Source: Zygnema circumcarinatum SAG 698-1b (taxonomy: Eukaryota > Plantae > Zygnematophyceae). Taken from it: a stretch of DNA of 64,000 nt. Below are positions 56,296 through 64,000 of this stretch, piece after piece. The stretch covers positions 2,790,001 to 2,854,000 of the forward strand of contig CM074806.1 in assembly GCA_037447605.1 (NCBI GenBank), in the 5' to 3' direction. Positions within the stretch are counted from its first letter, which is position 1. The number at the start of each line of letters is the position of its first letter. The notes beneath the pieces were generated by a model that saw only the letters and a program-made list of their open reading frames with translations, searched no databases and was not told the DNA's origin. The position numbers were made by a program, and so were the translations under genes.

Positions 56296-57289
56296 GGCGG
56301 CGGAGGAGGCGGCGGCGCTCGCTCGCAGCGCCTGCAGTAGGTCTTAAAGCCTTGCCGCTAGGGGCACTCCGACACATGCTGCGCAGTTCAGTAAAAACGT
56401 GACCTGCACATGGAACTTTACCATAGACAAGGAGCCTCCCGTTCCGGGCAGCCTTCAACATATCGATTTTATGCCGATATCTATACGATATCAAGCGATA
56501 TGTGACAAGGTAGCCGATACGCGCAATCTATCCGCATCCGGTTCCTGCCCCTCCTGCTGCCACGTCGCATGCAATCCCTTCCCACGGCCAATCAGGTGCT
56601 CGAGATGGATGACGTGGCGCCCTCTGCTTCCAGGCGAGATCCTCTCCGGGTTGCGTGGCCCAGACTTGGAAACATTTTCCGTAGCGCTGTCCGGAATTTC
56701 CATCGGTTTTAAAAAAGCTAGCCTCGAAATCCCTGCGGGAAGGAAGGGGACCCGACAGGAGGAAGTCAAAACTCCGTCAAGGCAGAAGCGATATAGCAGT
56801 TCCGCCACACCAGCGCGGGGTAGTAAGAATGATGGACACACAACCATACTCATTTTAAAATACCATTTATTTCATGATTGACCAATCTCTCATCACGCGG
56901 TTTCTTGCCTCGTCAGCACTGAACTCCGCTGCTGTCCGTACGATGCCTCCAAGAAAGCAGGACAACCGCACCTGAACCGGACAAAAGCATACCCCAAAAC
57001 GACAAATATGTAAGGGACAAAACAACCTGTCCAATCGGATGGCGTCAGCATCGCCACGTGCCGTCCACGGCCCGTCCAAGTCGCAGTCTCCCTCGCTCGC
57101 GCCAAACCCTCCGTACTTGCCGTACTGCTTTCATACGGCACCGTACCGGCTCGGCCGCCCTTTGGGCTTCGTCCCTCTCCTCCGTACGGCAGCGCGTGCG
57201 GTGCCGTACAGGGCGCGGCCCTGGAGAGGGTCCGATGGCGGGCGGGTGACGGCGGGAGAGAGGTGGACGGCCGCGGGCACCAAGGGGCG

Positions 57290-57510
57290 GGGAGGGAGAG
57301 GGGAGGGATAGGCGGGGGAGAGGGGAGGGAGAGGGGAGGGAGAGGGGAGGGAGAGGGGGGAAGGGAAGGGGAGTCNNNNNNNNNNAGGGGAGGGAGAGGG
57401 GAGGGAGAGGGGGGAAGGGAAGGGGAGTCGGGAGGGAGAGAGGGAGGGAGAGAGGGAGGGAGAGGAGGGAGGGGAGGGAGAGGGGGGGGAGGGGAGGGAG
57501 AGGGTGGGCG
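57290..57510 (+). repeat. Polypurine low-complexity tract containing a 10-N assembly gap (57376-57385)
   Basis: GGGA/GA repeats. The sequence on either side of the gap is nearly duplicated (...ggggaagggaaggggagtc). Confidence 0.9.
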
Positions 57511-57519
57511 GGTGGGAGG

Positions 57520-60500
57520 ATGCGAGCGCAGGCCCACGGGCGGTGGCGGGGCGGGGCGCTGGCAGCGGCCGTGCTGCGGCTGCTCGTCGGGGCGGTAGCC
57601 GCTGGTGAGCGCCGACTCCTCACTCCGGAGCCAGCACTCTGACGCGCTGCTCCAAAGTCGCGGGATGTCGTCGAGGGCTGAGGGCTTCCAGGGCTGAGAA
57701 AATGAGCATTGTGGCACTGGGAAGGAAGGCACGGAGTGCGGAACGTGCTCACTGGCGTCCCTGTGGGCTGTGGGATGCGTTCCGCGCTGCCTGCGTCCGA
57801 TTAGAGCAGGCCGTTTGGGATGTGCCGCGTGGCAAGGGAGCATGGCGCACCGCGTGTGCCTTTCCCTGCCATATTCTCACCATGGCACATGCCCAGCCAA
57901 GCCAGTGGTATTCGAGGAGTGCGCTGTTCAGGCTTTAAAGCTGTTCCATTACCCCGTGATGGCTTTGGCTTGCTTCAACCTCAATATCTACCAAACATAG
58001 TCAGATGCAACCATTACTAGAAAGCCATCACTTGTACAGGCCAAGAAAGTGGACATCCTCCTTTTCCGTTGCTCGTCACCCATACCTTCCACGCACAATA
58101 CTTCAAAAAGTAACACTGTTCGTAAGAATTTTCTTAATCAGAATTCATCTATCTATAATCATTATTCCTCCATACTGATCACACTTCTGACCTTTTGGAC
58201 TCCACCTAGGTCAAATTGCAAAGCATCATCTACACATTCAAAGCAGTGCCGACAAAGACTTCCAAACCACCTTCCGCTCGCCAACCCTAAGCATGCAAAT
58301 TTCAATCTCCCAGCAAACAAAGCGACCTGCACCTCTTCCCTTCTCCACCCTTCAGTTGAACTGACCAACTGAACCGCGGATTCCAGAGCTGAAACACAAC
58401 AACTTTACATTGTTCAAATGTTGATATCTGCATTGCGCAGAGTGGAATTTCAACAGCTTTGATCCCAGTCCCGACCTCCTTCTTGGCAAAGCCACATATA
58501 CCGATGGCCTCCTCCAGCTGACCAACGCGTGGGACAGTCAGCCTCAACTGCAGACGAGCGCAGCACTGCTGAGCAGCCCTGTCGAGCTCATCAAGGACCA
58601 GGGCACCGCCTGCACTGCCGCTTCTTTCACATCTGCCTTCTCCTTCCAGTTTGCAGATGCCTACGGATTCCAAGATTGGGGTTCAGGCATAACCTTTGCG
58701 ATAATCGGGTCAAATGCCAATCCCACTATGTTGACGGATGGCACAGCAGGTCGCCTCGGATACTTTTACTCCGGAACGAACCGGCCTGGCAGCCTGGCTG
58801 TTGAGTTCGATGTGCATCAAGATCTGGAGTATGGCGACCCGGACAGGAACCATGTCGGACTCGACATGGCGTTCTCGACCCGTTCCCTCATCACTGCTCC
58901 TGCTGACCCTATCGTTCTGGCGGACGGCTCCGTTGTGTATGTGTGGATTGAGTACGAGGGCGGCTCAGAGCTTACTTTGAGCGTGTACGTGAGTGCGAGC
59001 AGCATGCGTCCCTCCGAGCCCCTTCTGAAAGCAGTGGTTGACATGTGCGCCGTTCTGCGGCCCGCCGGCTGCACGACCTGCTCTAATGTGACATCAGCGT
59101 ATGTCGGGTTCACAGCAAGCACTGGAGACGGTGAAGAGTATGAGACGCAGAATATCCTGAGCTGGAACTTTCTTGTGAAGCCCATTCCAACAGGTGGCCT
59201 CATTTTACCAAGGGCTCAAAGTTGTGCTCTCTATACTTCTCTCTCTGCCTTCTCCCTCTTTCTCTCCTTCTCCTCTGCTTCCTCTACCTCCCCCTCTGTT
59301 CCTCTCTTCCATTCTTCTCCTTCTTTCCGGCTTTTTCTCTCCCTCCTTTGCCCTTTTTCTCTCTCCGACCCTCCTCCTTTGGCCCCCTCCCCTCCCCCCT
59401 ATCCTCTCGCCCCAAGCCTCCTCGATCTTCTCTCTGCATTCCTTTCCCTCCCCTTCCCACCCCTCACCGCTCCCCCACCCCCCTCCTCCATCCTTTCCCT
59501 ACACCCCTTCTTTCCCGATGTTTTCTCACTCGCTCTTCCTTTTGGCTCATCCTTTTTTTTCCTTTTTCCTTTTTTCCTTTTTTTTTCCTTTTTCCTTTTT
59601 TTTCTCCTTTTGCTTCCCATAGTGGCATAAGAATTGTGCTCGAGGTTATGGACCGCCCGTGTGGTCCTATTCAATGAGTGTGCTAGAAAAAACTCACTTT
59701 CGCCTTACTCCTTAGTGAGTCTTCAGGTAGACTTTATGGGCCTATGACGAGGTGGTAAGACACGCTTTCCAAAAGCAGGAACACAGGTTCAAGAGGTTAT
59801 AGTCACTTAATGGGCCAGCAAGTGAACCGTTCTGTTATTATAGAAATCTGTACATCCTGAAGCAATGAACGGATAAAAGACCTTCATGGCTTCTTTGTTT
59901 AACTCCGCCATGCGTTTCTCCGTTCTCGTGCCATGTGGCCTGCAGACTAAACTGATGTTCTCTTACATTTCCTCAATTGTTTCCTGCCAACTGTGAACGT
60001 GGATGTGCAGTGTGGATGTTCGATAGTTTCAATCCTGAACCAGATGTGCTGTTGGGTAGAGCGGTGTACCGCCCAACCTCACCTCCAACCTTGCAACTTA
60101 CCGACTCGATCGAGAACTTCCAAACAGCACAAGCGCTATATCAACAACCTGTCCTTCTGCTGCAGAACAATGGGCCGAAATGCTTTCCCTTATCATTCAC
60201 CTCCACCTTCTCGTTCCAATTTGTAGACGGATATGGCTTCTCAGACTGGGGATCCGGAATGACCTTCATTGTGGTTGCATCTAATGCCAACTTAAGCATG
60301 TTGGACGGGGGTTCGGGAGGACGCATCGGTTACTTCTACCTGTCACAATCAGAGCGGCCGGGATCAATGGCAGTCGAGTTTGATGTGCATCAAGATGCAG
60401 AATTCATTGACCCAGACAGCAACCACGTGGGCCTAAATGTCGCTTTCTCCCCAAGGTCCAACGTCACTGCTTCTGCTGATCCAATCCAACTTGCAGACTC

Positions 60501-63500
60501 CGCTGTGAAGTATGCATGGGTCACCTATGATGGGCCCTCTCTCACACTGAAGGTGTACGTCAGCATGGCCAGCTCTCGCCCTTCAGCGCCTCTGCTGACT
60601 GCGCACGTGGACACGTGTGCTGTCCTGCGCCCCCCTGGCTGCACAAGCTGCGCAACAGTGACGTCAGCATATGTGGGCTTCACAGCGAGCACGGGGGGGG
60701 GGGAGGAATATGAAGCACATAACGTTCGAAGTTGGGAGTTTGCCACCAAATCATTCTTTCGAGGTAAACTCGGTCGGACCTTGTAGAAATCTCTCCGCGA
60801 TGTGATCCTGCTCGCACTGCTTCTACTGTTACTAGGAATTGGGCGGGGTCGCTCAGTGTTCTAAAATATTTGGAACTCGAAACTCTCGTTCTGGAGGGAT
60901 GCAAATGGTGCCTAAGGCTAGAGCACAACAGCACAGTGAATCTTGCACTTAAGGTATAACAGTTAGTGAACCAGATGAGAAGCAAAAGTGAAAAGAACAT
61001 GAAGGCAAAGAACTAAAATTGAAATGTTTTACTATGGGAAGTGGGATGTCGGGGACCTTTCCTACCAGTCCAAGTCGAAGTTTGAACTGACTCACAGACT
61101 CTAGTTTGGGCCCTCCGGTGCTCCTGCAGACTACGCACCTCCTTCCCCTCCCTCTCCCCCTCCTCCACCCCCAAACCCACCTCCTCCTCGTCCACCACCC
61201 CCCCCACGCCCTCCTCGGCCTCGTCCCCCTCCTCCTCCTCGACCCCCTCCATCTCCTCCCCCACCTCGGTCCCCCCCTCCTCGCCCACCTCCCTTACCAC
61301 CTCCCCCTCGCCCTCCTCCCTTCCCACCTCCTCCCCGCCCACCTCCTCGCCCGCCCCCTCCCTCGCCTCCTCCTCCCTCTCCCCCTCCCCCCCGACCTCC
61401 TCCTCCTCGCCCGCCCCCACCCTCGCCTCCCCCTCCCTCTCCCCCTCCCCCTCGACCTCCTCCTCCTCGCCCACCCCCTCCCTCGCCTCCCCCTCCCTCT
61501 CCCCCTCCCCCTCGACCTCCTCCTCCTCGCCCCCCTCCCACTCCTCCTCCCCCTAACCCCCCCCCAAAGAGCCCTCCTCCTCGTCCCCCCCCTCGCCCCC
61601 CACCTCGCCCGCCCCCTCCCTCTCCACCTCCAAATCCACCGCCCGTGCCTCCACCTCCAAGTCCGCCTCCCCCTCCACCAGGTCCGATCTCCACCTTGAT
61701 GTGAAATCTGTGGTCTTCCTTGGGATTGGACCGGGGGATTGGGTCACGCTAGGGGACAGCTAGTTGGACTATCATTCACATCCCACGGAAGTTTTTAGTC
61801 CAACTATCGTAGTCTATGCCAAGCTTCAGTTTCAATAAGTCAATGTGGTCATCTCTGAAGCATTGTAGCCTGAATCTTTGGCCCAAATTTGAATGTTACT
61901 GACAATGTTCAATTACTTTGCAGTATGGACATTCGATGGGTTTTCCCCCCGACCAGACCTACTTCTTGGAAGAGCTGAGTACACCGCCACCGGCTCCCTG
62001 CATCTGACTAATCAAGAAGATCCCCGGTACAATCAGACGGGTTTAGCGCTTGTTGGAACCCCAATTCCACTCTTGGAAGACTCTTCAACAGGCGGCTGCA
62101 AGGCTGCCTCCTTCAGCACGCGATTTTCTTTTCTATTTTTCGATGGGTACGGCTATGCCGATTGGGGTTCAGGAATAACGTTCGCCATTATTGGCTCCAA
62201 TGCCGCGCCCTTGCTGCTGACCCAGGGTGTTGCAGGAAGCATTGGCTACGCTTACGCTTCACAGACGGAGCGGCCTGGCAGCATTGCAGTTGAGTTTGAT
62301 GTGCATCAGGATGCAGAAGTCAGAGACCCGGACCGGAATCATGTGGGGCTCAACATGGGCTTCTCAGCAGCCTCCATACTGACAGCTCCTGCCGACCCCA
62401 TTGTTCTGGCCGATGCCATGGTGAAGTACGCCTGGATTGAGTATAACGGCAGCACCAAAACGTTGTCCGTGTACTTGAGCATCACTCCCACCCTCCCTTG
62501 GACTCCTCTTCTCACTGCAGTTGTCGACTTGTGTGCCGTTCTGCGGCCTGCATCGTGCAACAGCTGCGCCCAAGTGACTGCCGCGTATGTCGGGTTCACG
62601 TCGAGCACTGGCGATGGAGAGGTGTATGAGACACATGACATTTTGAGCTGGAATTTCACAAGCTCACCTGTTGCGGCCAGTATGTTTATCCATGCACTCC
62701 AAATTACCCCCCTTTCGCCTTGAATGTTGTACACTCGTTTGCAGCACTTGGAGATTCCTTGTTGTGCCCTTCGCATGAAACTAGTCTTTAAGGCCATTGG
62801 ATCGAGTTTTCCATCTGAATGTTTCGAACTTCAACATCTTCGAGTACGCATGAAACTGTCCCCCAACCTCATTCATTGAGTATGTGTGTTTTGGTCGCTT
62901 CATCAGGTCGGTTCCCCTCGCCGCCTCCTCCCACCGTTAGGCGTCCACCTCCACCACCTCCTCCACCTCCTTCAGGTATGACATTTCTTGCGGCAGCCTC
63001 GAAAGGGAAAAGGTCCCTTTGAAGTTAAATGTCCAAGAAAGCTTTTCTACATATGTTAATCAAGTGCGCGTGCTCGCTGATTTTTCAGGCTCGCAAGGCA
63101 CAGGATTAGGGTTGCGCCCTACCACTCTGCCAAATTTGAACAAGTACTTCCGGTACATCAGTTCCGGCCTAAAAAACTCTCAAGATCAGAAGCAATCATG
63201 GTCCGGCACTACTTATTGGGATTGGTCAAAGCAGCCTCCAGTTGTGCAACCAATCAAGAACCAGGGAGGATGCTGTATGCAAACTCTCCATCTGCCCTCT
63301 TTAACATCCACTTTTTTCAAGATTTTGTAAAAAGTAACCAAAATTCAATATGTTTCTCCTGCCCATAACCAGTCCCTAAAAAAAACCCTCGCTTGCTTCA
63401 GTCGCAGCCCCCGTATCGACGATGTGTTTATGACATCGTATTAATGCTCTATTGATTGGCCCACCATCTGCTGCCCCCCGCAGCCACGTGCTGGATATAC

Positions 63501-63716
63501 TCGAGCGTGGCTGCCGTTGAGAGCGCGCTGTACATCGCCAGTGGCAAGCGGCAGCCCGCGGCGGCCCTCTCCGAGGCCCACGTGCTCGCCTGCTCCCCCG
63601 CCAACCGCTCGTGCGCGGCGGGGGGGTGGCCCACGGAAACCCTCGACTTCGCGGCCTCGTCCGGCCTCGTCAGCGCGAGCGCGTACGCCTCCGCGCCGCA
63701 GTGCATGCCGCCGCCG
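57520..63716 (+). CDS. Secreted mosaic protein: signal peptide, legume (L-type) lectin x2, extensin-like linker, lectin, short Pro linker, papain-like (C1A) protease; 3' end not resolved in the window
   Basis: Exons 57520-57604 (MRAQAHGRWRGGALAAAVLRLLVGAVAA), 58441-59193, 60011-60763, 61130-61681, 61924-62679, 62907-62975, 63089-63274 and 63484-63716. Each lectin has AVEFDVHQD...DP..NHVGL and YVGFTASTG...H/N.I/V.SW.F. The protease segment is WDWS...VQPIKNQGGC|STCWIYSSVAAVES...LSEAHVLAC. Confidence 0.78.
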
Positions 63717-64000
63717 GTAACGATGGGGCCGACCGATGGATGCCTGCGTCGGGGGGGGAAGGCCATGGGGATGCGCAGCATCATAGGCGCATTGGATGCT
63801 TGATGGCATGATGGCGTGGTCGTTTGCGACAGAGGGGGGGGGTTGGTTTCTGCGTAGTGTGATAGTGTGCGCATGCTGTGGGTTCTGATTATGGACGGAA
63901 GAGAGAGAGGGCGCAGGTGAGCGGTGTGGCGCGAATATCGAAATATGAGCTGGTGAATGTGAACGATTGGCTGGGGATCTGGCTAGCTTTACAGCAGCAG

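Follow-up and report, generated by a model that had tools for sequence, protein, structure and literature searches.

The 3′ end of a 64,000-nucleotide (nt) stretch of the Zygnema circumcarinatum SAG 698-1b genome (contig CM074806.1, positions 2,790,001 to 2,854,000; hereafter the window, numbered from its first base) raises the question whether legume-type (L-type) lectin domains, a proline-rich rod and a papain-type (C1A) protease are joined there in one secreted protein, and what such a protein might do. A first-pass annotation had read a single spliced frame at this locus, from a signal peptide to the N-terminal half of a protease. The gene occupies the + strand from 57520 to the window end at 64000 and continues beyond it. 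Nine exons (E1–E9, Table 1), separated by eight introns that are all of the GT..AG type, splice into one frame of 1157 codons with zero stops, in the order signal-like N-terminus, lectin 1, lectin 2, proline rod, lectin 3, proline linker and N-terminal half of the C1A protease. RNA contigs support seven of the eight introns at exactly the predicted bases, and the annotated frame is thereby borne out. The locus is a single real, expressed algal gene.

The transcript evidence comes from four public runs of this organism (X1–X4), whose contigs were compared with positions 57545–63544 only. The run records are incomplete, X1 being listed as “RNA?” and X2–X4 carrying no stated kind; the contigs behave as RNA in that they are spliced and reach an exon depth 3–5 times the intron depth. 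Joints within contigs were found at 57604|58441, 59193|60011, 61681|61924, 62679|62907, 62975|63089, and 63274|63484; at the junction 60763|61130, a loose end of 28 nt matches the beginning of E4 exactly. Record 3 of X1 (1678 nt) comprises 30 nt of E1, E2, and E3, plus 171 nt more, which we infer to be the start of E4. In record 5 of the same run (3109 nt), the end of E4 is followed by E5 and E7; its joints pass through E6 and lead into E8, and ~1970 nt of it lie past the end of E7. RNA contig sequence extends ~1.7 kb beyond the compared stretch. As record 5 carries lectin 3 together with protease exons, lectin and protease exons lie on one RNA contig, their location on separate transcripts having been named beforehand as a finding that would overturn the annotated architecture.

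Each of the exons E1 to E7 ends in phase 1, which makes E2–E7 symmetric 1-1 exons. No other in-frame ATG, GTG, or TTG occurs between the preceding in-frame stop and the ATG at 57520, and the 45 codons upstream of this ATG, back to an N gap at 57376–57385, hold no in-frame stop. Hydropathy analysis of the encoded N-terminus revealed a basic start and a hydrophobic core at residues 11–28, in line with the signal peptide of the earlier annotation, and found no further hydrophobic stretch in the 1129 aa encoded by E1–E8. The N-terminus therefore fits a cleaved signal peptide, and nothing in the part seen points to a membrane anchor. Directly 5′ of the ATG, positions 57263–57519 form a GA-rich repeat with an 11-nt period, within which the 10-N assembly gap is located.

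Table 1 Exons of the lectin–rod–protease gene, with their content and the evidence for each.
Exon	Positions	Strand	Content	Evidence
E1	57520..57604	+	First in-frame ATG, signal-peptide-like N-terminus, phase 1 end	Hydropathy; splice to E2 in X1–X3 contigs
E2	58441..59193	+	L-type lectin module 1, 251 aa, single phase 1-1 exon	Pfam Lectin_legB, translation, RNA contigs covering 58440–59190/59193
E3	60011..60763	+	L-type lectin module 2, phase 1-1	Pfam E 1e-36; E2–E3 joined in X1 record 3
E4	61130..61681	+	184-aa proline-rich rod, phase 1-1	Translation; 3′ junction 61681|61924 in 4/4 runs
E5	61924..62679	+	L-type lectin module 3, phase 1-1	Pfam E 3.8e-36; PDB legume lectins; X1 record 5
E6	62907..62975	+	23-aa proline linker, phase 1-1	Joints 62679|62907 and 62975|63089 in 4/4 runs
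E7	63089..63274	+	~45-aa pre-segment, then mature C1 N-terminus to NQGGC (oxyanion-hole Gln)	Translation, family alignments
E8	63484..63716	+	C1 from S-T-C-W (catalytic Cys) through GGWP region, phase 0 end	Pfam Peptidase_C1, translation, joint 63274|63484 in 4/4 runs
E9 (partial, off window end)	63917..64000	+	Mid C1 domain ending ...WLGIWLALQQQ	tblastn of family members, translation

The two lectins, ~180-aa rod, third lectin, and short proline linker of the annotation were recovered as three Pfam Lectin_legB (PF00139) matches (E 3.5e-20, 1e-36, and 3.8e-36; 73, 127, and 125 bits against a cut-off of 26.3), a rod of 184 aa, and a linker of 23 aa. Lectin 3 matches legume lectins of the PDB down to E 1.7e-18 and over the whole domain (residues 9–237 of 242 in 1dzq). 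The three modules share a mutual identity of 62–63% and form one clade with a support of 100/99 in a tree of 36 lectin domains, which argues that they arose by internal duplication of one phase 1-1 exon. The Mn/Ca ligands Glu, Asp, Asp, and His are kept, the motifs AVEFD, DPD, and NHVG being invariant in all three modules. Each module further contains four cysteines, three of them inside an insertion that is absent from legume lectins.

The rod encoded by E4 is 77% proline and contains nine SPPPP, 12 SPPP, and nine RPPPP motifs, 19 arginines, and one tyrosine. It shares the Ser-Pro(3-5) repeats of extensins and lacks their tyrosine cross-linking motifs (YXY, VYK), no YXY being found in its 184 aa. 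Classical extensins carry such cross-link motifs. Judged by composition, the rod would be a spacer of the algal hydroxyproline-rich glycoprotein (HRGP) type rather than a cross-linking extensin. The label “extensin” chosen in the first-pass annotation is apt for the nine SPPPP motifs and loose in view of the 19 arginines, the single tyrosine, and the missing YXY. The wall anchoring also proposed there is only loosely supported, and for the same reasons covalent anchoring in particular has no support, as the rod offers no cross-link motif.

The protease part is identified by a Pfam Peptidase_C1 (PF00112) match on the last open reading frame (ORF), that of E8 (E 1.8e-9, 38.5 bits against a cut-off of 20.7). 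The annotated Q...GxCxxCW motif is present: it reads NQGGC|STCW (Gln19, Cys25-Trp26) and spans the RNA-confirmed E7/E8 junction, and the GGWP region is likewise present. E9 was placed by homology, through tblastn matches of the family members P0155 (E 4.5e-5), P0174 (E 3.8e-4), and P0183 (E 7.5e-4) described below, which defines intron 8 as 63717–63916, with GT..AG ends in the genome sequence.

Between the proline linker and the mature-type N-terminus (..YWDW..) lie only ~45 aa, hereafter the pre-segment. Pfam searches returned no I29 prodomain in E7 at E values up to 0.1, nor in 13 relatives scanned, and the precomputed Pfam lists for family members do not contain it either. The RNA junctions also exclude a concealed exon; no I29 prodomain precedes the protease. 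The pre-segment is conserved in 24 sequences (E7 and 23 family members); its consensus is G[LF]..N..F[RH]Y.S.G..W, in which a Phe is invariant and a Gly nearly so. It lies directly before the mature C1 domain. We analyzed this region in an AlphaFold (AF2) model of P0155:530–810, comprising pre-segment and C1 and built on a 36-row alignment, which reached a mean predicted local distance difference test (pLDDT) score of 85.5. Mature papain-like enzymes superpose on this model from residue 52 (root-mean-square deviation, rmsd, 1.4–1.5 Å), proenzymes from residue 1–3 (procathepsin K with Z 32.2 over 248 residues; also propapain and procaricain). This suggests that, in the model, the pre-segment is placed where the C-terminal part of a propeptide lies.

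How far this arrangement of domains is shared was analyzed by an exhaustive HMMER search with lectin 3, which returned 2012 proteins at E ≤0.001. Among the best 150 of these 2012 matches, five also match the protease piece of the window. All five are lectin-C1 proteins with EGF, plus LysM in P0056, often with leucine-rich repeats (LRRs) upstream (Pfam). The lectin-C1 relatives come from Closterium strains and one EukProt transcriptome, and all of them are unnamed. P0155 is a complete ORF of 1157 aa with two lectin domains, C1 (582–789), EGF, and LysM; P0056, P0151, P0067, P0121, and P0139 have a similar order of parts. A further search with the C-terminal 613 aa of P0155 identified 29 family members, from the EukProt alga, Mesotaenium endlicherianum, and eight Closterium strains. 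I29 occurs in none of the 29, whereas the next matches, all insect and amoeba cathepsins, carry it, and the junction is collinear across the family. Across the family the heads in front of the C1-EGF-LysM cassette are LRR, LRR plus lectin, lectin, EF-hand, or none, and the cassette with LRR, EF-hand, or no head is found in Closterium and Mesotaenium. The EF-hand heads belong to P0184 and P0190 (Closterium), where according to precomputed Pfam lists the C1-LysM cassette stands behind calcium-binding EF-hand domains and not behind lectin or LRR.

The C1 piece of the window falls inside a 28-row family clade (support 98/94), apart from I29-bearing proteases, and within it in an 85/94 subclade that unites nearly all lectin-adjacent members (exception, P0125); as its row is partial and its branch long, its place within the family clade is unsure. 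The best identities are 37–41% for lectin 3 and 33–40% for the C1 piece, values so low that the own full-length protein of this genome must be absent from the collections searched. On these sequence comparisons, the gene belongs to an undescribed zygnematophyte family of the type head plus C1-EGF-LysM, and its closest protein relatives are all zygnematophyte. The ~1970 nt of X1 record 5 past E7 would be enough for ~450 aa and an untranslated region, as in P0155. Together, the relatives and the ~1.7 kb RNA continuation indicate that the rest of the protease with its His and Asn, and then EGF-like and LysM modules, should follow downstream of the window.

The lectin heads of this family appear to be mobile. 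In the EukProt alga a two-lectin receptor kinase (P0001/P0154) and the protease P0155 share both lectin modules pairwise (d1-d1 93/79, d2-d2 100/99), and the two-lectin head has therefore probably moved between a kinase gene and a protease gene in this alga. Taken together with the phase 1-1 exons of the Zygnema gene, the pairwise-shared lectins point to an exchange of heads by exon shuffling. Among the best matches to the algal lectin were also proteins with three to four tandem L-type lectins (P0002, P0003, P0004, and P0007; ENA, Logan, and NCBI). By Pfam, P0003 and P0007 combine these with DUF4347 and a PQQ sugar dehydrogenase or galactose-oxidase-like module, and related matches sharing this domain set bear cyanobacterial or Phycisphaerae names.

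It is highly probable, in our view, that the product of this one expressed streptophyte gene is a modular, secreted protease of the papain type, some 1600 aa long. In the mode of action proposed here, the protein would enter the secretory pathway, where its SPPPP-rich rod would be hydroxylated and glycosylated into a stiff spacer. Lectins at one end and LysM at the other would hold the enzyme on a carbohydrate-bearing surface, be it the own wall, mucilage, or a microbe, and the protease would cut proteins locally at that surface. A role as minimal propeptide is conceivable for the pre-segment; were it cleaved during activation, like C1A propeptides, the lectin-rod head would deliver a zymogen and then be shed. 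The function as a glycan-guided secreted protease is inferred from this arrangement of parts, and roles in defence, wall or mucilage remodelling, or mating/conjugation are guesses.

Several observations weigh against this reading and fall into two groups, the first concerning activity and ligand. The positions of the catalytic His159 and Asn175 and of EGF and LysM lie past base 64000, outside the window. The pre-segment part of the P0155 model reaches a pLDDT of 56–78 only, and homology of the pre-segment to the I29 propeptide was not supported by profile–profile comparison (hhalign probability 0.08), which leaves only the structural overlay on proenzymes. In the phmmer alignment to UEA-II, the canonical sugar-binding Asp of loop A and Asn of loop C are replaced in all three lectin modules by Ser (in DWGSG) and Glu, and loop C is two residues shorter; the lectin ligand may accordingly be something other than a sugar, and the term “glycan-targeted” used in the annotation is not supported as stated. 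The Closterium relatives P0067 (GCADSW) and P0139 (GCAESS) have Ser in place of the catalytic Cys, with His and Asn kept, and are probably pseudoproteases, so that not every family member is an enzyme.

These findings could be accommodated if the gene were real and its product a non-catalytic binding or sensing protein, or one whose lectins have a non-sugar ligand, and land-plant L-type lectin receptor kinases do often bind non-sugar ligands. The gene itself, however, keeps Gln, catalytic Cys, and Trp (NQGGCSTCW) and the GGWP region, the lectin metal ligands are retained, and 36 of 36 aligned sequences (25 family members and 11 other C1 proteases) have the catalytic residues His212 and Asn232. 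We therefore regard this explanation as unlikely, although it is the strongest of the rivals to an active, surface-targeted protease.

The second group concerns the continuity of the gene. In X1–X4 no contig bridges ~61300–61565, the ~250 nt where the rod exon is most repetitive. In X1, the 3′ contig (61566–63544 side, lectin 3 to protease) has a depth of 156.6 compared with 31.9 for the 5′ contig (58441–60763, lectins 1 and 2), a five-fold difference confined to this run that could reflect 3′ bias or an additional shorter transcript. Contigs also start at ~57575; the first 55 nt of E1, ATG included, are therefore known only from genomic sequence, and the N gap lies 135 nt upstream. Both the unbridged part and the X1 depths would suit two transcripts, one with lectin 1, lectin 2, and rod and the other with rod, lectin 3, and protease, with a break or internal start somewhere in the repetitive proline exon. 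Yet E4 is an uninterrupted open exon of 552 nt, joined by splices of one phase to lectin 2 on its 5′ side and lectin 3 on its 3′ side, exon depth in X2–X4 is even over the 5′ and 3′ halves, repeats of this kind are expected to interrupt De Bruijn contigs and were skipped in the comparison, and the relatives have lectins and C1 on one ORF. Two separate transcripts are, in view of this, quite improbable. Least credible of all is an assembly chimera of two loci fused via proline-rich repeats, for which the N gap and the coincidence of the unbridged part with the most repetitive 250 nt could be cited, since lectin 3 is closest to lectins 1 and 2 (100/99), as tandem duplication in one gene predicts, the phases match, and no loose end leaves E4 for other sequence, bar short chimeric matches of 21–25 nt.

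A secreted lectin-headed protease from one gene was next compared with known systems. Literature searches yielded no description of a lectin/proline-rod/papain architecture or of the family, and no cluster of at least 50 members combining lectin and C1 was found in the ESM Atlas. The first-pass annotation had called the architecture unknown, which holds with respect to the published work searched; it does not hold with respect to sequence collections, as proteins with lectin and C1 (plus EGF and LysM) exist in several Closterium strains and a EukProt transcriptome. These proteins (Closterium, e.g., CAI5947134.1, CAI6005672.1, and GJP84243.1; EukProt, TRINITY_DN3972; P0155, P0151, P0056) show the same order of lectin, short proline linker, pre-segment, and C1A without I29, and the lectins of the EukProt proteins share the extra cysteine-containing insertion of the Zygnema gene. 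They differ in having one or two lectins instead of three and no 184-aa rod between lectins, and those of Closterium usually have LRRs upstream. Their identity to the Zygnema gene is 31–41%, and they are annotated as “unnamed protein product” or “hypothetical”. What is specifically new here is thus the triple lectin, the long rod between lectins, and the RNA-proven junctions.

Papain-like cysteine proteases of land plants have an I29 prodomain and, if any accessory module, a C-terminal granulin (RD21-type). They are likewise secreted C1A enzymes with a proline-rich linker to a cysteine-rich accessory module, and the catalytic fold of P0155 is closest to plant enzymes (caricain E 1.4e-40; ervatamin rmsd 1.4–1.5 Å); the Zygnema gene differs from them in lacking I29 and in its N-terminal lectin-rod head. 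Lectin receptor kinases share with it the signal peptide and the L-type lectin ectodomain, whereas in the part seen it has neither a transmembrane segment nor a kinase, and its output is a protease. Potato lectin, Volvox pherophorins, and Chlamydomonas agglutinins have a polyproline rod of the SPPPP type between their globular binding heads, and no protease is attached. This design of heads and SPPPP rod of hydroxyproline-rich chimeric lectins and algal HRGP rods recurs in the Zygnema gene, where it is combined with a protease. The animal system of mannose-binding lectin (MBL) and MBL-associated serine protease (MASP) offers an analogy: there, as proposed here, a stalk rich in hydroxyproline carries the lectin heads, and these are linked to a zymogen protease with EGF modules. 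The parts are not homologous, however, MBL and MASP being separate chains and MASP a serine protease, and no cascade is known in the algal case.

Zygnematophytes are the closest algal relatives of land plants, and the present family implies that they build secreted papain proteases unlike those of land plants, without I29 and with L-type lectin, LRR, and LysM ectodomains, types that in land plants are coupled to kinases. The single-exon phase 1-1 modules, together with a lectin pair common to a kinase and a protease, make this a clear-cut example of how exon duplication and shuffling give rise to a new protein. If lectin and LysM do target the enzyme, the family would represent a new class of glycan-guided extracellular proteases and a test bed for C1A folding and latency without the classical prodomain. 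A bolder proposal, which we offer tentatively and with low expectation, is that the family acts as a single-chain pattern-recognition protease, in which receptor-type heads (L-lectin and LRR, exchanged with receptor kinases) on a hydroxyproline rod bring a papain zymogen that has a LysM tail and no prodomain to a glycan surface, microbial or wall, where it is switched on by binding or by cleavage of the pre-segment. Were this true, the family would be a counterpart of receptor-kinase immunity with a protease as output and, in function, an analogue of the MBL-MASP lectin pathway of animals.

The contigs hold some further features around the gene. X3 and X4 also show the joint 59193|59623, which uses an alternative acceptor in intron 2 (59194–60010), at a depth similar to that of the main joint. 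In this form V-A-stop follows right after lectin 1, and it may yield a 281-aa protein of signal and single lectin, or be a decay target or a splicing intermediate. Intron 2 also contains a CT-rich tract (59200–59620) that holds the frame of lectin 1 open for 145 codons further and is spliced out. An ORF at 58728–59630, in which the lectin 1 frame continues into a Ser/Pro/Leu/Phe-rich tail, was rejected as coding because this tail is the CT-rich tract and is absent from RNA.

Contigs of X2 and X4 match only the proline-codon stretches 61296–61320 and 62959–62979, flanked by unrelated sequence on both sides. Read as an isoform, they would require a joint 61320→62959, with loose ends at 61296 and 62979, that is non-canonical (TT..CC), has a side of 21, and shifts the frame; this isoform was rejected, and the contigs probably represent another proline-rich transcript. 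Proline-rich ORFs on the − strand at 56893–57843 and 61131–61694 were likewise discarded as genes, being mirror images of the GA-rich or CCN repeats.

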